DNA of 63,752 nt, counting the filler, from Choristocarpus tenellus KU-1152 (taxonomy: Eukaryota > Protista > Phaeophyceae): the NCBI GenBank assembly GCA_964200185.2. It is 11 parts of 11 records of this genome, joined end to end, with 100 filler letters (N's around TTAATTAATTAA, not from the genome) between each part and the next. Parts side by side here need not be neighbours in the genome. Positions count along the whole stretch, not along the records: positions 29,462 to 38,413 come from CAXNAD020004170.1; 10 more parts are not named here. One strand, 5' to 3'. This document shows, in pieces, positions 5,211 through 38,413 of this stretch. Numbering within the stretch: the stretch's first letter is position 1; every line of letters starts with the position of its first letter. Both the position numbers and the translations under genes were made by a program. Below the pieces are notes generated by a model that searched no databases, was not told the origin of the DNA, and was given only the letters and a program-made list of their open reading frames with translations.

Positions 5211-7859
5211 TTCTTCGTAATAGGTAGGGCAAGGCGACAAGTCTATGATGCAAGCATCCATCGCCGACCCAATGTACCAGCATCATGCATCATTTCCACC
5301 CTCGTACTAAGCACTAATAGTTGTAGGATAAGAATGCACATACATGCATGTGCAACAGGTGGACTGCTGCCGCATAGACCCCATTACAATCAAGCCCCCA
5401 TACTATGAATATTACTGACTAAGTCGGTCACCACGTACAACATACTATATATGAGATGAGTTCTTTCCACACATATATCTCTGTCTGTGAACTTTTCCCC
5501 ACTTCCCCGCTTGACCTTGTCGTCGACTTGGATAGCTTTCCCTTTGGTTCTGCCCCAACACCCGTGACATCTTCGCCACCAAATTTTCATCAACCAACCC
5601 TACTTCACATGATTTACAATAGTTTATTTTTGGTGTGTATTGGTTTGGGTCTTTCGTGGCATCGGGATTGGACCCTGGAGCGGATTCTATTGCCCAGAGT
5701 TATTGAACATATGTTGTTGATCTGAGTCTGCATCAGCACTTATTTTAAGTTTTCACTCCTAAACTAGTCAGTATCGTCGCATCTCAGGCGACGGGCTTGG
5801 TGCATCGGTAAGTGCTAGAAATCGAATCGTACAAGGTTCATGCACGAATGCTCTCTTGGTCTTCTCTCCCATCGATTCTTCAATCCTTTCCCAACCGTAG
5901 TCTTTCCACACAACTCTCCCGTCCTACCATCATCGTCGAGGTACGATAATTCTTTCCTACCCTTATTGTCGTCATCCTCCACGGCAGCCTACCTTCCTCG
6001 TTTCCCCTACGTGTTCCCTATTCTCCTGGGGAAGGTTCGGTTTCGAGATTGGTGACGTAGCCTTTCGATAAGTCCACGATATCGATCTGCAATGTGGATC
6101 AAGTCCTTGATCGCAGCTCAGATTGACATCACCCCAATGCTCTCTCCTGCAAGCCCTTCCGTCGAATTTGATGTAAACCCAATTGACATCCCAATCTCAG
6201 ATATTAACTTCCATATTTGCTGCGCTGCGATACCCATTCCCTCTCACAAGGTGCTGATAACAAGGTCCTGCGGTTGTGCTATCGAGAAGAATAGAGTGTG
6301 CACTTGACAGGCATACATGGGAAGACCTCGGCACAGGTACTGTTGACTTTCAGGCAATCCCTCTGGAGAATTACTACTTGTCGTTGGATAGTGCCTTTGC
6401 TACTGAGTAGGGGTACTGTGCTGTAGTGAAGCTTGGCATCGAACCCCACTGATGCAACGCTGCTGATAAGGGCGAAGCACAGAGTCCAGTACAGCTTTTT
6501 GAAGGTTCCCAAACAGTTACAGTTCAACACGATTATCCAATGAAGTTGGTCGAAACGGGACATTCGCCGAGAGAAGTAGGCCCAGTGCTTCTGGCAGTTG
6601 TCGTCGAGGGTGGGTTGGACTGGATGGAATAGGCTAAGTTGGTGTTTCAGGTTTCACCGACGTTCTTCTGTACAGCATCCTGGGCCAGGTGCCTGCATTG
6701 TTTTAAGAAGACGAAAAATGCACGATAAACATTGCAATTTAGTGTATGCAATCGCACTAGGTATTCTGTTGCAAGCAGTTAGATGCAATGCGATCGAGAA
6801 AGTTACTCTCCTTGATTGTTGAGACTCAAACTCGTCCACCTTTCCGTTTGAATGCCAACTGACCCTCACATCACATCTCTTGTCTTGTTGGATCCTTAAG
6901 AATTTCTGTTGTTGTGAACACATGGTGTCTTCTTGCTTACCTGTGGAAGTGGCCCTCTTGCCCTTGGGAGTTGATGCCGTTGGTATGTGTTAAACTGCCC
7001 TATAGTGTATTGCTTTTCCACCGTTTGTGACAGTTAACAATACTGATGTACATGTGGTGCATAATGCATTTGCCAAACCAAGTTGGTCAATATTCTTTCC
7101 ATGGTGAGATGCTATACGTGAACTCACCGACCAGTTAACTAATACACGCACTCATCAAACAGCCCTCTCTGGAGACGTAACCCACAATTCGCCTAAGCAA
7201 ATTATCATACACCTGTACATGTATCTATCCACCCCCACGTTTTATAACACCCAAGAAACACGCAAAACAGAGACAGACAATGTGAATAATTGCTCATTCG
7301 TGTTCATCTGCCTCCCCTACCCACTTCATATTCCATGTGTTTTTCAGGCGGCGCCAGTCCTACAGTGGAGGGGCTCCTGTAATGATATTTCTGGTCTCAG
7401 CAGCGGGGTCAAATGTCTCCTTTGTTATTTCCCCTCCTCTTGCCTCTTCGAACCGGCAACCTAAAGGCCTCCTTGCCCTGGGTCTCCCCCCCCTCTCTGC
7501 CCCGAGTCCCACTTGCATAGCTTTTCCTGTCCCCACTATAGCTGCCACAGCCGCAAACCGGTGGTGGGCTGTCAGGGTTTCATTATGTGCTGGAGGCACT
7601 GTATCGCGAGGTGTGTCACTACCAGAGGAGCATTTGTCGCTGTCGTTATTGCCTGTCTTTAGGAGGCATTTATGGCGTGGGCAGAAAAAATGCGCAGGGA
7701 GGGGCTGCTGTCCTCTCCCATCAGCAGCAGGTGGGGGTGGGGAGGAGCAGAGTCTGGGGNNNNNNNNNNNNNNNNNNNNNNNNNNNNNNNNNNNNNNNNN
7801 NNNTTAATTAATTAANNNNNNNNNNNNNNNNNNNNNNNNNNNNNNNNNNNNNNNNNNNN

Positions 7860-7927
7860 CAGTCAATTTGGGGTCAAGCCCATCCTCAATGAAAAGCTCC
7901 ATCCTCAATTTTTGAAATCGGCTGTTC
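7860..7927 (+). mobile_element. Right TIR of palindromic MITE family E (contig start)
   Basis: CAGTCAATTT.GGGTCAAGCCCATCCTCAATGAAAAGCTCCATCCTCAATTTTTGAAATCGGCTGTT nearly identical to 30428-30499. Confidence 0.85.
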
Positions 7928-8450
7928 TAGCTATTGTAGGTGTCACTATGCGTGTGGGTTGGAGTTCGTGATCATCGCCATATAAATCTTAAACCAGCAC
8001 CATACATAAGGAGTACTCTGCATATTTTGTGACTGTTCCACGTGGTGCACAGGCATACCATGACTGCGTTTTCATATTCTCATGCCAATTAGTTTTAAAT
8101 CTACATTGACTTTATAACCATGCTAAATTGGGCTAGTGATAGACACACTCTGTCCATCATCTATTTGGATATACGATCGTATCGTGCTTTTCTCTTTTCA
8201 AACCCTTGACTCCAACTCTACCCTCCCTCCCTTCCGCAAAAAGGCACAATCTGACAGATTTATTGAAAGAGGGTACACGAGGCACTGACTTGGGTTAGTA
8301 TGTTGTGGTTCCATTGTTACCCAACACTGTGAAGTGCACTGTTGTACTACTACTAGAAGTACTATTAATACTGAACTGTTGTCAACCTCTATTATTCAGG
8401 ACTCACTCAGACATACACATCAGTCATATTGAAGGCTATGAATGAGCAGG

Positions 8451-8693
8451 GAGTCAAAGCATTTTAGGGCATAGAGTCGTGCCCGTTTGGTGGCCAAAAT
8501 CCAATGTTGCGATTTTAATGTAATTTTGGCTATCGTGTTTGTTAAGAATTGTCAATCCTCATTCCGGACATACACATGATACCTAATCTGAAACATTTTG
8601 GAGTAGGAAAATGTCGTTAAAAAAGACCATGGGAAACCAAGCCCCAAATGGACAAACAGGGGAAAACTCGTACCCTCTGAGATACTTTCACTC
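8451..8693 (+). mobile_element. MITE body type C, complete
   Basis: GAGTCAAAGCATTTTAGGG...CCCTCTGAGATACTTTCACTC; body colinear with 3358-3618 and 43462-43717; no clean TSD. Confidence 0.9.
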
Positions 8694-11600
8694 TTGATGA
8701 GCTTGACGCTACATACATACATGTTGTCCAAATCCTTCATTCATCGCCATGACAACTTCATCTGGTAGTAGGCATTCACCCAACCTACCAAAATGTATTG
8801 CTATACAAAAATAAAACTGCATAGTAGGAAATTTCAAGAATATTTCCTGGATATATCGCTGCCAGGAACAATTGTATCCTCAGGTTCTTGTGCAGCATGT
8901 TTTCCCAAGCATCTACAATGATGATATGGCCTTCAATCTGGCACAACATGAACTGACAGGGTCAACTCCATTCAACCAGCAGTTTAAGAAAAATAGGACT
9001 AGGTGATTTTCATCTCCACTCACACAAAAGAGCAAAAGTAGTCCGCTCCCCAGGAACAAATGTAATTGTGGCTTGCTGTGATAAAACTCCCATCGCTACA
9101 CAACATATGTAACAGTAGGGTCCCCATGAAATATGTTCAATATCCAAAGAAAAGTGTCAACCACTATACAGAATTCCTGGAGTTACAAGTTAGGGAGGAT
9201 CAAGAAAGTCTCCACCCTTCCAATCACACAACTCAATCATGGGGGCCTGAAGTCATTGACAGGCGCTGCCCTGACCCCTGTCATGAATGAATTGCCTCTG
9301 TACCTTCATTGCTGGCTGGTGATAGCAGCAGTCAGAGTATGATAAACGTAGCATGGAAAAATCCATTATGAAGCAATTCATCTTCTCAACATTGAACTGC
9401 CCCCTATACATATTGCTAACGAAATACAGGGTCTTTACATTTCCTCATCAATCAACTTACTTGTAAACTTGCTAAAGTTTGTCTCATTCCTCCAGTTTTT
9501 ATCCACAAAATTATTGTCAAATATTTCAACTAGGTGTGCCAGTCAGCTAGGAATTAATCTTTGGAAAAGCTTATCTGAAGTGTGGAGCAGGTTTCAAGAG
9601 ATTGTCACCTCTCTCTCCCTGCTGTAAGAACCAAAACACAGTATACAGAAAGAATACTACATCGTATATACTGGAGTATTAGTACTCTGTACCCTGAAGT
9701 AGTAATACACAACTAACAACATCTTGAAGAGCAGCAATTCCAAACAAGACTGCACTATCCTCCTTCTGCTGTTGATCAACACCAAGAATTGAGCACCAAA
9801 AGAAAGATATTCTCTAACCGATCATGTGCGTCATCATCTTTAGTACTGCAGCTAGTTGGCTCAGGCAGAGCAATCCACTTAAACTGGTTCATGTTGTCAC
9901 CCACTGCCAAGGTGCTATAAAGCACAACAAAGCATTCTCTTTTGTTTGAGGACCATATGCCGTCCTATCTATACCATATAGCTGCTGCCGGTAGAGGAGT
10001 CATGTCTACCTGGCAGTCTATCTGTACTCCTCCTAAAGGGGCACCTTATAGCACAGGGTAGTGGACTTTAGATGGTATGTCAATAGAGCGATGTAGCGGC
10101 ACCATGTAGGGTAGTAACTTCTACCAAGTCAGGGTCTATCCTCCTTCCTTCCACTGCCGACTCACAGAATATGGTGACGCACAAAAAATAACTGTTTTTC
10201 ACAGCACTGGAGAGTTGATTTTTTGAAGAACTCTTCAATTGTATTCTCCGTGAAGGGTTGCTCTCCTTATGTAAATCACTTAGAGTGGGTCGTTTACCCT
10301 GCTCTGGACATTTATTGCTATTTTCCTGGCATTAGAGGTTCAAATCGTTCTTGATACATTATTCATGCCTTCTAAAGTCTTACATTCAACACACTTCATT
10401 AATAGGTTTAAAGAAAAGCACCATTATATAAAATAGAATATTGTCACTCTCTGCCCTATAACGTTGCATCATCTTCCTTTGGGGTTGCAACCAGCCAGCT
10501 CAGGAGAGCAATCCTGTTCAGGTTGGCCAATGTTGCAACTGGATAGGCACAATATTCACAAGATAGCTCCTGTTCTTTGCATATTTTTTGCAGAGTGTTC
10601 TGTCTGTGTCATTATAAAAGTTGTCCGAGGATGAGCTAAGTTCACCTGGCAGTCTCCCCATAACCTTTCTCCAAACATGGTAGGTACCTTGTAGCACAGA
10701 GGAGACAGTCACATGGACTTGCATGTCCTCCAGTGACTACCATGTGGCATGAATGCTTCAAATGGTCTGTAGCCCTAAAACAAAGGACACCATTCTGTGC
10801 CATGCAATGAATGCTCTGGCGAAGGGTGTGGTGGCAGCATTGACCAGCTTGAGCAAATCACTCTCCCTCAGCTGCCCAGGTTCAGTCCCCAGGAGAGTGG
10901 CATCATTTGCCTTTTCATTTTTTTGTGGGTAATGGAAGGAGGATGGACACTGACTCAGCAGGGGTCACTGCCTGAGAAGGTGCCGCTGGACAATGTTATG
11001 TTGACATATCTCAATGTACATGATCAAAGCAGTACCTCAAAGCACAGGTCAGGGACATGTAGAGGTATATCAACCAATATAGATCGATGCCCATCAACAC
11101 CCTTTAGGGTTAGGTAGTGAATCCTCCTGAGACAGTATCCATCTTCCTTCCACTGCTGACCCACAACAAAGACTGGTATATGAAACAAATAATGTCATTC
11201 TCTGCCCCATTGTGTCACACTATTGTCCTGGGGGCCGCAGCCGGTCAGCTCAGGCAAAGCTATTAACTCAAGCCAGTTGATGCTGCCATCCCACCCCCTG
11301 CCTTGTAGGCATATAGCACAGAACAATTTCTTTTGTTTCAGGGCTACAGACCGTTTGTTCCTTCCATACCACATAGTGACTGCCAGAGGATGAGTCAATC
11401 TACTTGGCACTCTCTCAGTCTCCTTATCCTATCGTGGGACCTCTAAGCACAGAACAGAGAGATGAAGATGGGATGAATGCCAATAGAGTGATGCCCACTG
11501 CATCTTGTCGGTTAGTGACCCCTATATTGTAATGAGACAGCGTTCATCCTCTTTCTGCTGCTGACTTGCAATAAAGGATGTCAATCTCTTTTTTATCATG

Positions 11601-12628
11601 GCAGACAAAATTCTTTGGACATGTGGTCAACAAGCTCACATGCAGCAATCGGTTCAAGTTCACCGACACTATATATACGACCACTTGTGTTCCTGTCTAA
11701 TATAGTCTGGAATGGTGTCTTATTAATCATGCAGATAATTTTGAAGCTCAAGTAAACCATAGGATAATCTAATAGTGTATTTCTGTATTGGAGTTTCTTT
11801 GAAAAGTGGCAACAAGGGTTGCAAGTAAGTGTTACCAACCAAGGGCAGGTTATACTGCAAGGTCTGTTGTAGGACACAGCCCTACCTATTGATAAACTTA
11901 CGACTAACAATAATGCCGGTGGTATAGCAAACCATGGGAGAGTGGGGGTAATGCTGAATCAACAGGGCTGAGATATTTCACTTTCACCAATACTTATGAA
12001 CAAGAAAGTATATACTAAGATGATGTCATTAATATTATACTTTAAAGTACTCCATGTCTCATTCATCTATATACTCTTTTAACGATAATTTCTAAGATCT
12101 GTGTTGACATCTATGTGTTGTTTATGAATACAACCTCCCACTAACGTAACCCTTCAAGCTAAAACGAAACCTGAAAACCGTAGCACCCTATTGATGCATG
12201 GACCAAGCAAGAATGCCTTTTTAGTCAGCGCCACTGGACAGTTGATGCTCATTTTGAGTCAAGATAATTGAGATGTAGGCGGCTTTGTCCCATTTCTCAG
12301 TCTAAGCCATTTTTCTTACCCTCTGCAGTACACCCTATTTCATTGCCTTCTGTATACAATAGTGAACGCATAATTGATGTTCCGTCATTGCACGCACAAA
12401 GTAACCCCACAAATCAGTAACTCTTTCTGCAATTATACAAAATGACATCTTGTTGCCATTCCTCGTGATCCTTGACCTACTACCCTGCCTACCTCCCGAT
12501 TACTTTGGCTCTTTTGCAGATCAATTCGAAACAAATTGAATGCAACCCACGTCCAGAAAACGCGCAAACTATTGGGTAGTGAGAGACAATTGTGCCAACT
12601 CCCATCACCCTATACACAAGAATTAAAG

Positions 12629-28700: not shown

Positions 28701-30281
28701 TTCCAACAGTTAATACTAGAGCCTGCACCTAAGGTTTAGCGAAGATTACCTTTACGTAACCCTAACCTGATACAACAGCATCACTCTGCTTGCCTAACAA
28801 ATGTCTAGCAAAATTTCTACCAACAGCACAAACTTTCTTTAAATATATAGATTTAGGTCATCATCCAGATAAGTTGACTCCAGTCCAAGGAACAATCGAC
28901 AATGTAGACACCAGCGTACCCTAACTCTAACCCTAACCCTTTATCAACTTCCAAAAACATAGCTTCACTTTCATGATGTGGTAGGTAAAAGGTAAAAAAG
29001 ATAACAGGGCATGACAAAAAAAACATATCATTGTGAGGGTTGTGAATAAGGCAAAAGGGAGACATAATAAAATAAGAAATGGTATATTTCATTACGTAAC
29101 TAAAAAGGCATTCAACATTTCTAACAAACATTCCACTGACTGGAGAACTAACCTCAAGCATCATCTTCAGGCGATGATTGAGAGTAGATATCCCACCACG
29201 TACCCATCTGCATAGAACCTGTCACAAGATAATAAAATTGAAGCAAAAATACGAAAAATATGTCACTTCATCGATGCGATGATAGCAACGGAATGCATCA
29301 GTACAAAAGTGGTGGTGGTACAAAATAAACAAAGTAAGCTAAATCAAAAAGTCATTTTACANNNNNNNNNNNNNNNNNNNNNNNNNNNNNNNNNNNNNNN
29401 NNNNNTTAATTAATTAANNNNNNNNNNNNNNNNNNNNNNNNNNNNNNNNNNNNNNNNNNNNGGGACATTGGCGCAAAGCAAATTGCTTTTTGAGAAGATG
29501 CTCTGTTCTTCGTGTGGGTCCTTGTTGCAGGAGTTCACAGATTATATGTGTTTCACCGTAACCCTAGCCTTTCACCTGAATGGAGGGGAGTTGCACAACT
29601 TGGAAGGCGTGTATGTTGTGGTCAGTACCTTGATTGCTATCGCGGTTGGTTGCAACTGTGGTGATTGCTGTAGATGTATTTTCAGGGGTAGGATGAGGGT
29701 TCTTCTCTCAGATCGCAAGAAGCATAGACAGTTGAAGGGACACTCACTGGAAGGTGGATCTTAGCGTCTGTGAACATCAAATGATTTTTTTTTTTAATGC
29801 TTGCTTTCCTTGTGTGAGCTAGGTGAATGGGATTAGGGTTGTGCATCTGGGGGGCTGATGCTTGATAAATGGCAATGACTATTCTCGCCACCCTGTAAAA
29901 TGCGGACTGTCAATCCTTAACATTGATGATGACTCATTGGCAATTTTAATTCAAGAGGGAGGTGATTTGCTTCTGAAATGCACATCCGATTTGTGATGTG
30001 CAATTCCCTGCACTTAGTTCGTCCAATGTGAACTCCACCACTCCAGCGTACAGTAATGGACTTCTTTCTCACGACTCCCCGAGTAATTGGCTATTTTTAT
30101 TTTTGTGCACCAATCCTGCATCACATCACATGTGTAAATAGTGTCCGCTGCCCTTGAGGAGAGGTAGATGATCAGTGAGGGAAATTTCTTGTCTTCTTTT
30201 AGCCATCGCCTTTGTGGATGCATCCACGATTCCAGGTGATCTTTCAGTCTGGTGCCAATGTGTGGTATATGCTGCCCTCCA

Positions 30282-30499
30282 AACAGCCGATTTCAAAAAT
30301 TGAGGATGGAGCTTTTTTCATTGAGGATGATGGGCTTGACCCAAAATTGACTGGGGATAAAGTGTCGATATGTTTTGTTTTATTAATTGTCATTATTTAC
30401 AAAAATATATATATCGACACTTTATCCCAGTCAATTTTGGGTCAAGCCCATCATCCTCAATGAAAAAAGCTCCATCCTCAATTTTTGAAATCGGCTGTT
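30282..30499. mobile_element. Complete palindromic MITE family E, ~90-bp TIRs, 4-bp TSD TCCA
   Basis: AACAGCCGATTTCAAAAATTGAGGATGG...GTGTCGATAT and its near-perfect reverse complement around a ~40-nt AT-rich loop; TCCA at 30278-30281 and 30500-30503. Confidence 0.92.
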
Positions 30500-31249
30500 T
30501 CCAGAATATGGAGTATTTGACTCGAAAGAAATGCTCTGTAGCTCATCTTCGGCTCATACGTACGATGAGGTTTATTCATTATTATTCTTGTGTCAATCAG
30601 TGTCTTAGCACCAGTCTTCCCGCCTCGATTATGCAGTAAACGAGACCACAAGATTACGTTGTCAGTGACATCATTATTCCTACGGGTTTGTGTGATGTAG
30701 ACTATCTGAACGTACAGACACCATATCACCATTGCTGTCATTTGATCCAGTAGTAGTTCTAATGTAATGTTGACTCTTCTTTGTCCAAGCTTGTGTGACT
30801 GCTAGGGTTCGTTGCATCTGGTTGGTTTCTGTGGCTTGGTCTTTTGTCATTCTATCATCCTACACACACACAATGTGTTGTATGTTCAATGTATAGATGT
30901 ATAGAAGGGTGCCATTGTCAGTCATCACCTACCTGCCATTTGTCTAGTTCGACCCCAAGTTCCAAGAAAAATCTTGATTCAACCTTCATACAGGCACATG
31001 GGTACAACCTGTCTTCTGCCCTCACACTCATATAAAATGCATGTATATTATGCAGCCTCTGTTGTGGGGCTGCAGGAAAGGCTGTATTTTTTTTATCAAA
31101 GATCGGGCAAAAGGGAGGCATTGAGAGGACAAGATAGTAGCTACCTCTTCCTATCTCCTGGAAGGACATGCGTCATGTAATAGAGAGGTTGCTTGGATGT
31201 AATATTTTCATTAATGACTGATGAACAACAATATATTAATCACTAACAA

Positions 31250-31409
31250 GGGTCTACACTAGGAGGGTGTCCATTTGGTCCAAAATCAGGAAAAGTGCAT
31301 TTTCATTATCCATCCGACGTACGCAACCAAATCACACAAAATTGCGACATGAAAAAATTGACCCCAAATGGACAGCCGCCACCCCCCACCAGATACTTTA
31401 CTTTGACCC
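31250..31409 (+). mobile_element. MITE body type A lacking left TIR
   Basis: GGTCTACAC..GGGTGTCCATTTGG...CCAGATACTTTACTTTGACCC. Confidence 0.88.
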
Positions 31410-31701
31410 AACAGTAAGAGTTGCTGCTTCTATTGTTGCGGCCATGTGTGCTTTTTTTGTTATTGGCTGTCCCAGTGTCTAAGAACACCAACTATATGGA
31501 AACGGTTTTCTGCCCTCCTTGAACAGTCAGTCCCCTTCTCCCAATGCATAGTCTGCACATCATGTGCTTGAAAGTAAATTTATGCATTGTGGTTGCCTTC
31601 CGTGATTGTGCGCAGTACTGATGCTTGAATAAGTAGCTCTAGATCTGTAGGTCACAATCAGTCAAGATAATTCCCTGTAATAGCATCATGACGTAGAAGT
31701 T

Positions 31702-31735
<34 letters not shown>

Positions 31736-31764
31736 CAGTAGTAGTAGTAGTAGTAGTAATAGTA
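31702..31764. repeat. (GTA)n microsatellite
   Basis: Directly visible, about 20 units. Confidence 0.95.
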
Positions 31765-32853
31765 AAACTACAGATCTAAGTATGGATTATTAACAACCAA
31801 GCTGCTTTCGTTGTTGGCAGTTTGATTTGCAGTGTCGATATTGTTATTGTGAATCAACTTTTTGATGTAGGTAGAACAAAAATATCAATACATCAATTTA
31901 TATTGTCCTCAGTTCCACCAGTTGGAATTTACGCCTACAATATGTGGCGATGAGCACAACGAAATACAAGGAACGAAGAAAACTACAGAGAGGATAAGGG
32001 GCATTAGCGAGGTCGAATTTTGGTTAGAAGTAGTTCTCTTTTCCCATTAACATGATGCAACAATTATTTCCTGCTTGTCATATCTGAAACAGGCGCTTAA
32101 CCCACGACATTTAACGAAAAGGCTGCACATTTTTAAAAAGGATTACCTTTTCATATACCCACTCCATTTTGTGGTCACACAATACAACTGGCTATCTACA
32201 GCTATTTAGTAGCCACTATTATGCTACTCCTCCTTGACTGTCTGCCATATATATCAACCCTCATGCGGTCAGGTAGAGGTTGTATTTCCTTCTGTGCTGA
32301 AATCGGCATTTTGTTCAAGTGTACATGGATGGTGATGACGTCCTCACTTGCTGTTTCTTGAAGGCTAAGGAGCTTCTCCACGATGGCATTTGACATCATA
32401 ATCCTCAAGCCTATTACTATTGATCAAACAGCACCAGTCATATTGTCCCTCTCCTGAGACATCTGCGAAACCTCAGTAGGCAATGCTCCAGTAGTTAATA
32501 TTTCAGTTTAAAGCAAAGGGCAACACTTTTAGTGAGTTTTAGACGCGAGGAAGGACTTATCAGAAAGCAGAAGGCGAAATTATGGGATTGTTAGTAGGCG
32601 TAACAATAGGCCTTGGAATATACTTTTCTAGGTACTCTAACACACTAATTTTTTCTTAGTACAACAGATTGTCACGCTCACAAAAGAATATCAAGATCAT
32701 GTTTATTGAGGTGTTATTTGCTACAGTGAGGATAAGTACACTCACTAAAAAAAAATCAAAGTATCCTAAAGGGGGGTAGACTTCGACTGATTTGACATTT
32801 TTCAGGGCCTATAAATTTGATGCCCGACTCTCCATTCTCATTGCCCAAATCCA

Positions 32854-33021
32854 AAAGAATATAAAAGTAAAGCTCCAATATTTACAAAATTTGGTATTGA
32901 AGATCAATTAATAAAACTATACCAGCCAATAGTTCACTTACCTTCTGGTGGGTATATTGTCATAAACCCAACTGAAGCACTTATTTCTATTGATGTCAAT
33001 TCTGGCAAAGCAACTGGTGAG
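32854..33021 (+). pseudogene. rne: Internal fragment of bacterial RNase E/G, Rickettsiaceae-like
   Basis: 56 uninterrupted codons KEYKSKAPIFTKFGIEDQLIKLYQPIVHLPSGGYIVINPTEALISIDVNSGKATGE with the Rne/Rng signature LxSGGxIVIxxTEALxxIDVNSG; AT-rich; missed by the ORF track because it has no start codon. Confidence 0.88.
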
Positions 33022-33211
33022 CTGGAAAGCTAGGATATCCTCCAAATCCAACTATTATTGAAGGCTTTATCTTTAAAAATAAGATAATAGTTTTCAAACA
33101 CGATATAACTAATTGATAAACAGATTTTATTTTATTAAATAGACGAGACATTTTGATATGTAGGTTTGCAATATGAGGTATAATCGGCATCTCTTTAGTG
33201 ATATATTTTTT
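33020..33211 (-). pseudogene. murG: Internal fragment of bacterial MurG, Rickettsiaceae-like
   Basis: KKYITKEMPIIPHIANLHIKMSRLFNKIKSVYQLVISCLKTIILFLKIKPSIIVGFGGYPSFPA; KPxhhhGFGGYxSxP is the second MurG G-loop; lacks the N-terminal GGTGGH and downstream HEQN. Confidence 0.85.
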
Positions 33212-34176
33212 CCCATCAGAGGTCTGTGATAGCAGAAAAAAAGAACATGCTGATGGATGTTTTGTCATTGCATTGAAGATTTAGGAACGGAAAACGAAAA
33301 TCACAAAAGAATCACTAAGACCCTTCACAACAAAAGTCACCCCTTTAGGATACGTTGAATCAAAAGTTGCCTATATTTCCTTGGGATAGTTGTACTGACG
33401 AAATGGGTGTCAGTACATCGTAAGAAGTCGTTTTCGCCTCTCGGATTGTATCTGCTACCTATCAGATTGTATCGACCACCGTATATGGAAGGCCTGTCCG
33501 TTTTGACCCGCGTTAGGGTTGGTTTTGCTCGACGGATTGCTGGCATTGATATGCCCAACAAGTCTTCACGAGGAACCAGATGGTGAGCACCCCCCCACCT
33601 CTGATTCGTCCTGTGGTATGATACCATTTTTTTTTGTATACATCGTCACGGTTGGTAGTGTATTTTATATCCAGATGTGCTTGTTGTAAGTATTTTTTTG
33701 AACGATGAGTTGAAGATGTTTGAACTACTGGACCTTTTCCACTGGATCTAATTGTACTGTCTCTGTTCGCGCCTTGGTATTTGCGCGTGTTGGGCTTTTA
33801 GTACTCCCACCCCTCGTCGTTTCATCTTCCCTTCTCTCATGTGCCGGACCTGGGTCGATGTTGCCAACCCGACCTTGGTCCCGCGTTTTTGTGGTGTGTC
33901 AACAGATACGATACTGCTATTACATAGCAGGGTTCGTAGTAGAGTACAATCCATTGTGTTACGTTACCTCGAATCGGATCGTCGAAGCCAGATTTCTGTG
34001 GAAGAGGTCGGGCATCGATGAGGTTCGAACCCTCAATGACCATGCATAAATAACCATCTTATCAACTACGTTTTAACATAAAACTAATTCCAATCATACT
34101 CTACATTACCAAATTAGGCAGAAACATCAACTACTAACCAATCCTATCACCTCGTCCAACACTGAATTGTCTAGCC

Positions 34177-37100
34177 ATGATGTCGTCGTCGGAGAAGTGG
34201 AAGAGCTGCGACATTGCAGCTATTAGGAAAGAGATTGAAGAGTTGCGGTTGGCCCAGAAGGCCCAAGAAGAAACTGAGACTAGGCTTGTGGAAGAGTTGA
34301 AGTCTCGCTGTGAACGCCAGATCAATCTCGAGGTACAGTCCAAAGTCCTTGGCACCTCTGACGTAGATAAAAATAGTCCTGGAGTGTGATAGTACCTGCA
34401 TTTGCTTACCTGCTGAATGATTTGGTCTGCTCAAGCTCATCTCGGTACCGAACCGGTGCTGAGATGCCGTTCTCTTTCAAGAACTTGAACCAAATACTTC
34501 AAACAGGTTCAGCTTGACGAGGCACAAGCACGCGCAGATCGGCTTCAGCGTGAGAAGGCAGATGACGAAGCCCTGTCAGGCGAGCTCGCCGCTATCATGG
34601 AGGGAGTTGGAATAACAGGTGAGCCGAATGACGTAGCAAGGGTTATTGGAGACGATGCTACGTCCAGCATTCAAGTTGGGGTCGATGCTGGGAGGAGTCT
34701 CGTTCAGAGTATACCGAGGAGTGGATACGCAGGAAACACTGAGGTCAGAGGAGTGGAAGGGAAAATACTGAGTGGAGATCGAAATGCGATGGACACGGTC
34801 TCGCTCTCATCCATGACTGCCCCAGATGGTGCAAGTCAGAGGGGTCTGATGGACGAGCGAAACAGACAGATGCATAACGACTCGATGGAGGCTGCTGCAA
34901 AGAAGCATGCAAAGTCGGCTTCTCCTAGAGAGGGATCATTGAGGGCTAGGGTGGTTGAGCTGGAGCTTGCCAGAAGGGACGCTTTGGACGCGTTGAAGGC
35001 TAAGACGGACGAGTCCCTTTGCCACCAAGTTCAGGTAGCTGTCTTCAGAGTGTTACATGCTTGTCACCCACCAAACCTGTCCGTTGCCATCTTATCTCTT
35101 ACAGTAGGTGTCTCTTTCTCAATGTTCAATCCTTGTACTCGCAGAAAGGGTTTGAGTAAAAGAAGAAATGACCGATTCATAGTTTCACAAGGCCCGGACC
35201 TCACGTTCACACAAGAATTGAAATCATGGTAGAACTGGGTTGACAATGTCAGCTTCGAAAGGCATGGGTTGTGTTTGACTTGTTATCCCGCCACCATAAC
35301 CCTGAATTTTACACTTTTGGCACAGTTCGATGCTGACGACTCATTGCTGACCTAAAATGATACCTCCCTCCCAAGGTGGAGCAACTGAAGAACGTGATTG
35401 ACGCTCTCAGTCACACAACAGAAGACGTGGACGGCGATGTCTGTGAACTCCAAGAAAGATCTACGCGAAACAGCAATGGAGAGGCAAGTAGCCGTTTATC
35501 GTGATACATGCTTGTGCTTTGTACTCACATCACATTCTCGAGACCCTCACAAAATCATGTAATTCTTGACCCTTGGGCTAGTCTCCACTTGTATGTTCAG
35601 ACACCGTTGGATCTGCTGCAAATGGAACAAAGAACCTTTGAAACGATCATGTCTAGAATGGTGTCTGTGAAGAATGTTAGGAAAGGCTCCTGGCACAGAA
35701 TTATTTGTCTCTGAAGTGGAGATCTTTTCCCTCCTTCGTGTCTGAGGGTTAGGGTTAGGGTTAGGGTTAGGGTTAGGGTTAGAGCTAGTTACTGTTCAAT
35801 GCTACGTATGGCATGTAGGGGTTTTAGATAAATAAGTCAACACACGTTTTCTTTTTTTCTGAGTGGTTTTTTCTTTTTTTTTTAATATCTCAACTTCGTT
35901 TTTTTTCTGAGTAATTGTTTTTGCCGGTGATATGGAAGGTTGTGTTCACACAGAGCTCTGATATTATAGTAAATATATTGTGAAATTAGCATGCTTGTTG
36001 TTGCTGGTAGTTAGGGTTAGGCCATGTACTATGTGTCACATACTATGTGTCACATACTATGTGTCACATACTATGTATCATGTACTATGTGTCACGTACT
36101 ATGTGTCATGTACTATGTGTCATGTACTATGTGTTGCAAGGCGCTTCTTCAGGTGGAGGTAGGAGAGGGCTGTATGTGAGCTCTACCTACACTGTCCATG
36201 TGAGTAACAATAATATGATACTGACTCATTGATGACATTGCATGGAAAACAGGATCATCATGTATCAATTGCACACTCAGAGGGTTTTGTAGGGGACAAG
36301 CGTGTCTCCACTAGCTACTCCGCTGTTTGTGAGACCCCTGATGTAGACCCAACAGCCATGCTTCTTCTTCATCGAAAGCCCTGGAGTAAGGAGTTGGGAA
36401 AATACCTCAAGAAGGTAGAAGCCGTCTTCGAGTGGCAAGGTTGGGAGAGGTAAGCTTGTCGAATGCATTCCGGGTTAGGGTTAGGGTTGTTGATTGAACT
36501 GAGCGTTAGGGTTAGGGTTAGGTTTACAGAGACAGACTTTCAAGATGTAGGCCTCTCATTTGGTTACGTCCTCAACACACTGTGGGGTACTTAGGGTTAG
36601 GGTTGGGGTTAGGGTTACAGTGACAGACTTTCAAGACGTAGGCCTCTCATTTGGTTACGTCCTCAACACACTGTGGGGTACTTAGGGTTAGGGTTAGGGT
36701 AATTTTTGTGCCGTGTGTTTGATGTATATATATATATTATTTTATTGAGACTAACGTAGTTTAGGGTAAGGTATCTGGTTAGAGTTAGGGTTAGGGTTTG
36801 GCACAATTGCTACTGCCTTAGTTTAAGGAGTTAGGGTTAGGGTTAGGGTTGTGTAAGGATTGATCGGTTTAAGGGTTAGGGTTAGGGTTAGGGTTAGGGT
36901 TAGAAGAGTAGATTCTCTCCTGAATAGTCTAGGGTAGACCCCTATGTTCCCCCTTTGATAGTATGTAGTTCTAGCCCTAACCCTAAGCTCCCCGTTGCTA
37001 TATTGTACATAGTATGCAGGCGGTTTTTTGTCACACTTCATTTTATACACGCATTTGATACACTCATTTGTCACACACGTTTGATACATTCATTTGATAC

Positions 37101-38249
37101 ACGCATTTGATACACTCATTTGATACACTCATTTGATACACTCATTTGATACATTCATTTGATACACTCATTTGATACACTCATTTGATACACTCATTTG
37201 ATACACTCATTTGATACACTCATTTGATACACTCATTTGATACACGCATTTGATACACTCATTTGATACACTCATTTGATACATTCATTTGATACACTCA
37301 TTTGATACACTCATTTGATACATTCATTTGGTACACTCATTTGATACACTCATTTGATACACTCATTTGATACATTCATTTGATACACTCATTTGGTACA
37401 CTCATTTGATACACTCTTTTGACTTGAGCGAGTTAAGATAAAAGTAAACATGTTTTGTCATCATCCCAGTCTTAATACAGCAATTACACATTTTGCCAAC
37501 CTCTCTTTATCGAACCCTAACCCTAACCCTAACCAAACTCTCCACATGAACTTATTGTGTCGGTCCAGATACTTTTATTTTTATTACTACAAATATTTTT
37601 TATTTGCAAATATTCATCTTTATATTATCATTATCATTATCATTATTGTCCCTCCAAAAATCAACCTCACCTCAACTGAAGACCCCCCCACACACACACG
37701 CAATCACCATGGCCCTATACCCCCCCCTTGACACTTGCCTTGCTTATACCTCCTAAATCCAAACCCTAACCCTGTAACCCTAACCCTAACCCTAACCCTA
37801 ACCTCCTCTCCCGCAAGGTGCAAAAACACTAACCTTAAACCCCAACACTAACCCTGACCCTGTACCCCTAACCCTAACACTAACCTAGACCCTGCAACCC
37901 TAACCCTAACCTCCTCTCCCGCAAGGTGCAGAAACACTAACCTTAAACCCTAATCCCAACCCCAACCCTAACCCTAACCCTAACCCTAACCCGTCAGAAG
38001 TCGAGGGTGGACTGCAGACCCACGTAGCCTTCCACCAGAGCTTCGGGATCTTCCCGAGGCATTCAAGTCTTCCTTTGGGACACAAACGCCTTCTTGTTCT
38101 GTGGCCACTCCTGCGGCAAAGGGGACCAGGGAGGGAAACGTGGGTGTGGGCGGCCGACTGGGTATGGTCAAAGGCCGGATAGGGGGTATGGTGACAGGTC
38201 TGGTGGGCGTAGCTCCGCAGTCATTGCTGACTAACCAAGAGATGACCAG
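34177..38249 (+). CDS. Coiled-coil protein with possible DysF-like region; exons 34177-34332, 34507-35034, 35376-~35483, (36141-36158?), 36281-36449, 37998-38249; 3' incomplete
   Basis: Splice signals and frame continuity at exons 1-3 and across the 36450-37997 intron (VEAVFEWQGWER/SRGWTADP); phase between exon 3 and 36281 unresolved; DysF call is motif resemblance only. Confidence 0.65.
35745..35782 (+). repeat. Interstitial telomeric (TTAGGG)n in an intron
   Basis: About 6 perfect units. Confidence 0.95.
36024..36133. repeat. 14-bp minisatellite TACTATGTGTCA(C/T)(A/G)
   Basis: About 8 units visible. Confidence 0.92.
36471..36903 (+). repeat. Clusters of (TTAGGG)n at the intron 5' end, including a ~90-bp tandem duplication
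   Basis: GGGTTA tracts flanking ACAG.GACAGACTTTCAAGA.GTAGGCCTCTCATTTGG...GGGGTACTTAGGG twice. Confidence 0.92.
37052..37416. repeat. 13-bp minisatellite CATTTGATACACT
   Basis: More than 25 near-perfect units. Confidence 0.97.
37513..37992 (-). repeat. Clusters of (CCCTAA)n at the intron 3' end, including a ~108-bp duplication
   Basis: CCCTAA tracts run to within 6 nt of the CAG acceptor; CTCCTCTCCCGCAAGGTGCA.AAACACTAACCTTAAACCC twice. Confidence 0.92.
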
Positions 38250-38261
38250 GTTAGTGGAAGT

Positions 38262-38413
38262 AAAGGAAAGGAAAGGAAAGGAAAGGAAAGGAAAGGAAAG
38301 GAAAGGAAAGGAAAGGAAAGGAAAGGAAAGGAAAGGAAAGGAAAGGAAAGGAAAGGAAAGGAAAGGAAAGGAAAGGAAAGGAAAGGAAAGGAAAGGAAAG
38401 GAAAGGAAAGGAA
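38262..38413. repeat. (GGAAA)n microsatellite
   Basis: About 30 perfect units up to the contig end. Confidence 0.98.

Follow-up and report, generated by a model that had tools for sequence, protein, structure and literature searches.

We found in the window, by which we mean the whole stretch of DNA analysed (63,752 nt), a bacterial insert of 359 nt that is very likely recent, heritable and non-functional symbiont DNA inserted into the nuclear genome of a eukaryote, presumably by end joining. The insert consists of a piece of rne and a piece of murG placed tail to tail (convergent), each gapless and without stops or frameshifts. Judged by sequence similarity, the donor was a marine Rickettsiaceae of the Megaira group (Megaera_A / Ca. 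Penulousia). The linkage evidence comes from the assembled contigs of X1 and X2, two samples of one organism from one study, in which most of the window is represented. The parts of the insert are as follows.

32853..33020, plus strand: internal fragment of rne (RNase E), codons 338-393; Pfam, NCBIfam and donor DNA match
33020..33211, minus strand: internal fragment of murG, nt 130-321, codons 44-107 of 361; NCBIfam and donor DNA match
32852..32853, no strand: left host/bacterial junction, abrupt end of the donor match; X1 record 8, X2 record 12
33020..33020, no strand: rne/murG joint, tail to tail with one shared base (A); spanned in X1 record 8, X2 record 13
33211..33212, no strand: right bacterial/host junction, end of the donor match; X1 record 8, X2 record 13
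33145..33145, plus strand: polymorphic site, murG Gly66 to Arg; derived in the window and X2, donor base in X1

The RNase E piece matched RNase_E_G in Pfam (E=8e-19) and TIGR00757 in NCBIfam (E=5e-21). Its closest DNA match was the Rickettsiaceae MAG g1_MAG_00005, identical at 166 of 168 nt (98.8%) and ending exactly at 32853 and 33020, while the second-best genome reached 83.5%. At each end of 32853-33020 the donor match broke off sharply. The piece corresponds to codons 338-393 of a 686 aa donor product, numbered from the preceding stop, and its two differences from the MAG (32925 and 33006) are both in synonymous third positions. In a scan of GTDB genomes the rne peptide had 100% amino acid identity to g1_MAG_00005, 82-95% to other Rickettsiaceae (Ca. 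Megaera venefica among them), and at most 69% outside Rickettsiaceae. A tree built from the 168 nt of rne paired the window with g1_MAG_00005 (support 92/87) over a poorly resolved backbone. About 4-8 kb downstream of rne on donor contig L086, a phage head/tail-like cluster (capsid, prohead protease, connector and head-closure genes, 7584-11883) was observed, which is probably a gene transfer agent. The 2,061-nt rne was also identical in the Puget Sound kelp MAG and in a contig labelled as a Tara sample (L001, L086, L087, L088), reflecting either a widespread clone or a labelling issue.

The MurG piece matched TIGR01133 murG in NCBIfam (E=1e-6). Its donor was reached only by a profile search followed by local BLAST, which recovered MurG proteins 95% identical to the fragment, the best of them encoded by g1_MAG_00005. 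Only distant matches (44-55%) were obtained among JGI metagenome contigs, and the best match among 50% representatives was 60%. The MAG was identical at 179 of 192 nt (93.2%), without gaps and over exactly 33020-33211, and the 13 differences comprised 10 synonymous and 3 non-synonymous changes. Sister strain L094, from Ocean Sampling Day metagenomes, was closer than the MAG (185 of 192 nt, 96.4%). The initial annotation had recognised 168 nt of RNase E on the plus strand converging with about 190 nt of MurG on the minus strand, and Pfam, NCBIfam and the donor DNA bear this out with coordinates within 1 nt. Its description of both as mid-gene pieces free of stops and frameshifts also holds in six-frame translation and in the gapless donor alignments.

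Both pieces trace to g1_MAG_00005, the two genes occupying separate contigs there (JALZUG010000071 and JALZUG010000059). The ENA assembly of the kelp sample likewise places rne and murG apart; murG sits inside a 155-kb scaffold of its own, over 70 kb from each end, so the two pieces are not neighbours in the donor. The MAG came from bull kelp blades at Squaxin Island and belongs to GTDB genus GCA-2402195 (PMC9238374 supplements). This genus is Megaera_A / Ca. Penulousia, one half of the Megaira group, for which a dictyochophyte, Bryopsis, Ectocarpus, a diplonemid and a kinetoplastid have been reported or inferred as hosts (10.64898/2026.03.27.714854). With DNA identities to Megaira-group Rickettsiaceae of 98.8% (rne) and 93-96% (murG), the insert nests in a known endosymbiont lineage. 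The Rickettsia-group donor proposed at the outset is supported, as Rickettsiaceae, and narrowed to Megaera_A / Ca. Penulousia. An organelle origin was ruled out, since both pieces match Rickettsiaceae almost exactly. Run X8 (2024, a second organism) contained a 4.7-kb bacterial rne contig, 3 bases from the insert and at depth 2.5; this organism may currently harbour a sister strain.

The rne match ends and the murG match starts at A33020, an overlap of 1 nt. The initial annotation had both pieces share AG at 33020-33021. The rne donor has GAA where the window has GAG, and the murG donor differs at 33019, so by the nearest donors the overlap is A33020 only. An AG overlap of 2 nt requires a synonymous GAG in the true donor, a codon present in 4 of 14 relatives. 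Being 1 nt by the closest donor and uninformative, the AG microhomology was rejected as a sign of mechanism. An overlap of 0-2 nt is at chance level; it is compatible with end joining and by itself no proof of it. A 1-nt overlap between pieces from separate scaffolds also fits an end-joined, numt-like insertion, but is again compatible and not diagnostic.

The coding content amounts to 56 of 686 rne codons and 64 of 361 murG codons in convergent orientation. There is no start, promoter or complete domain in the insert, which does not look like a functional acquired gene. A functional fusion protein was considered and rejected: the 90-codon minus-strand frame at 32996-33268 is made up of the murG piece, host sequence and antisense-rne sequence. 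The insert is not expected to yield a product, almost certainly has no function and is best seen as an inert relic. Neither the insert nor its flanks matched any entry in plasmid and phage collections.

In X1 a single contig of 4,034 bp and depth 21 runs from 31776 past 35700 and spans all three junctions. In X2 one contig (32211-32915) spans the left junction with 642 and 63 letters on its two sides, and another (32953-33420) covers both the internal junction and the right one, reaching 259 and 209 letters to either side of the latter; these bridging contigs thus extend at least 63 letters on each side of the junctions. The proposed check for sequence across the junctions was run on contigs, and all three are bridged in two host samples, both from one study, with X1 possibly related to the source of the window. 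The proposed comparison of coverage placed the insert at the depth of single-copy host DNA. At contig level, nearby single-copy contigs of X1 had depths of 17.9-20, and the flanks 17.9-21, against 21 over the insert, so the insert behaves as host single-copy DNA and not as DNA at symbiont depth. In both runs the host contigs by themselves account for the whole binned depth across the insert, so no free bacterial contig is apparent there. No free symbiont contig was seen among the X1 and X2 contigs, which is weak as evidence of absence, since X4, where rne was present, showed no murG. In X4 (a marine metagenome) and X8, true bacterial contigs match exactly 32853-33020 and then run on as rne.

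These data bear directly on whether the insert is an assembly or library chimera of host DNA with a co-sequenced symbiont or contaminant. Such an artefact might be suspected from the 98.8% identity between the rne piece and an extant bacterium, and because the piece is a contig of short-read size that could be checked on contigs only. However, the same three junctions occur in the window and in two samples, with different alleles nearby. Scattered single-base differences between the window, X1 and X2 show that the three do not derive from a single data set. Overlaps of 0-1 nt would leave a k-mer assembler nothing on which to mis-join. Depth over the insert is flat and single-copy, with no free bacterial contig seen, and a derived non-synonymous allele varies among the host samples. 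We regard a chimera as largely refuted and very improbable.

That allele also bears on the age of the insert. Of the 15 positions at which the two pieces depart from the MAG, 12 are synonymous, whereas change without selection would give about 25% (p ~1e-5); this indicates that the bacterium had already acquired most of the differences and that the insert is young. Only two murG bases, 33145 and 33055, are private to the window when compared with five relatives, and both change an amino acid. Gly66, which is replaced at 33145, is present in all close relatives. The change at 33145 is best read as a mutation in the host after insertion that still varies there. With two private non-synonymous differences, one of them polymorphic among host samples, post-transfer changes are too few for measuring decay; roughly, the insert has accumulated about 1% change or less. 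The recent date suggested in the initial annotation is therefore supported both by the near-identity to the donor and by the substitution pattern.

We suggest that a Ca. Penulousia-like bacterium would have lived inside cells of the host lineage, and that its lysis or digestion would have freed fragments of its chromosome. Non-homologous end joining may then have linked two such fragments and sealed them into a double-strand break of a chromosome, and the inserted piece would now be drifting neutrally. End joining is the accepted route for complex organelle insertions (PMC6215612). Of the endosymbiont-to-nucleus transfer by end joining that had been proposed, the transfer itself is supported, while end joining is what we infer as its route.

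Alternatively, two Megaira-group strains may each have supplied one piece, whether together or in separate events, or the donor may have been taken up as food or attached to the host instead of living inside its cells. The differences from the MAG are unevenly spread (2 of 168 in rne and 13 of 192 in murG; Fisher p=0.008), the nearest murG belongs to another strain (L094), and X4 and X8 have rne while no murG was seen there at 90%. However, murG varies by 7-13% over the whole gene among these sister strains, so one unsampled or recombinant donor is enough to explain the difference. A single event is also the simpler account of two directly fused pieces whose age is similar, and the known members of the Ca. 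Penulousia genus are endosymbionts (10.64898/2026.03.27.714854). We consider these departures from a single intracellular donor rather unlikely as a group.

The surroundings of the insert, from 29462 to 38413, are eukaryote-like, with a GC content of 0.43, TTAGGG tracts, microsatellites and minisatellites. GC is 0.32 in the rne piece and 0.27 in the murG piece, compared with 0.39 and 0.42 in the flanking 500 nt. The following features lie beside the insert.

32756..32774, plus strand: left arm of a 19-nt imperfect inverted repeat; relation to the insert putative
33340..33358, minus strand: right arm of the same repeat; relation to the insert putative
34177..35503: predicted single-copy spliced host gene, exons 34177-34332, 34507-35034 and from 35376, two in-phase GT..AG introns; coiled-coil-like

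The predicted gene begins about 1 kb to the right of the insert. Searched exon by exon, it gave no homologue, the exon at 34507-35031 included; nor was one found for the frame at 36214-36450. Ten other frames had no Pfam match, and a tRNA search returned nothing. Product records contained no exact match, Atlas matches were uninformative, and there was no sign of human DNA. The host context first described, spliced genes and host repeats around the insert, is confirmed by the GC contrast, the TTAGGG tracts, the microsatellites and a very high-copy inverted-repeat element; its spliced gene stands as a model only.

Several other repeats were observed in this region. A MITE-like element at 31262-31380 has terminal inverted repeats of 17 nt and a summed contig depth of about 7e5, against 21 for single-copy sequence, which makes it a member of a very high-copy family. 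At 30281-30500 a perfect inverted repeat of 75 nt with a partly paired centre of 70 nt forms a long hairpin; it gave only sub-threshold miRNA matches in Rfam and is probably a foldback or MITE element. Interspersed TTAGGG tracts at 35745-37992 switch strand across a 13-nt minisatellite (37033-37422), accompanied by duplications of 91 nt and 108 nt, and look like head-to-head subtelomere-like repeats.

The 19-nt inverted repeat raises the question of whether a host terminal-inverted-repeat transposon took up the bacterial DNA, as filler or as cargo, in the manner of a Pack-type element or through gap repair after excision. The repeat (18 of 19 paired) flanks the insert, its score was reached by 2 of 1000 shuffles, and both arms fall in bins of raised depth. 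Three short contig joints link a repeat block ending at about 32648 to one starting at about 33482, and one such joint occurs in both samples, as if other copies existed without the 833 nt between. These thin data hint that a low-copy repeat may be interrupted by the 833 nt (32649-33481) holding the bacterial DNA. However, no target-site duplication is visible beside the arms, whose flanks differ from each other, the insert is present once, and the short sides of the joints are 21-25 letters long, a range often repeat-derived. The homology does not extend inwards (875 of 2000 shuffles equal it), and long degenerate terminal inverted repeats were rejected. We consider capture by a transposon unlikely, somewhat more so than the donor alternatives above. 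If it were true, this would still be a real nuclear insertion, but a transposon would have set its site and might move it. Equally doubtful is a bolder reading, in which the insert would name the natural eukaryotic host of a widespread but host-less marine Ca. Penulousia lineage, found in metagenomes from kelp surfaces, Tara and Ocean Sampling Day. This host would belong to a group from which Rickettsiaceae are not known, and the capture would have been by one of its inverted-repeat transposons that collects symbiont DNA.

Insertion by end joining, the reading we prefer, has close precedents. In the nucleus of Volvox carteri, Rickettsiaceae gene pieces occur in symbiont-free strains, and a truncated 16S piece adjoins a truncated murB that is unlinked to it in the symbiont (Kawafune et al. 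2015, PMC4324946). The present insert resembles that case in its Rickettsiaceae donor from a lineage of algal and ciliate symbionts, in its truncated genes without stops or frameshifts, in the fusion of unlinked pieces and in the adjacent host repeats. It differs in being 359 nt long, compared with several kb in V. carteri, in having both pieces internal and convergent, in its marine Megaera_A / Ca. Penulousia donor and in a host with TTAGGG tracts. The phenomenon, fused unlinked pieces included, has thus already been published for V. carteri (PMC4324946), and there is no new mechanism here.

As in complex or mosaic numts and nupts, fragments of distant donor loci are concatenated at one nuclear site; in those insertions blunt or very short overlaps are ascribed to non-homologous end joining (PMC6215612). 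Unlike them, the donor here is a facultative bacterial symbiont and not an organelle. Nuclear transfers of Wolbachia DNA, which are common and known from insects and nematodes (e.g. PMC3998919, PMC4299567), likewise represent Rickettsiales DNA inherited in a host chromosome and usually non-functional. These examples are reported to be far larger and come from Anaplasmataceae, whereas the donor here is a Rickettsiaceae. The mitogenome of a fern, Haplopteris ensiformis, also carries short fragments of intracellular-alphaproteobacterial genes at host-level depth, some of them very recent (PMC10027690). Those Rickettsiales and Holosporales inserts are mitochondrial, with mostly Caedimonas-like donors, whereas the present insert is nuclear. 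No nuclear insert from Megaera_A / Ca. Penulousia was found in a literature search of partial coverage.

The insert is a clean and very young record of symbiont-to-nucleus transfer, with junctions precise to the base, a donor identified almost at strain level and a mutation that still varies. Its donor lineage is known mostly from host-less metagenome bins, and documented hosts of Rickettsiaceae among ochrophytes or other marine organisms are few (10.64898/2026.03.27.714854). The insert would tie this orphan lineage of marine symbionts to a host, in which the symbiont and further inserts would then be straightforward to seek.
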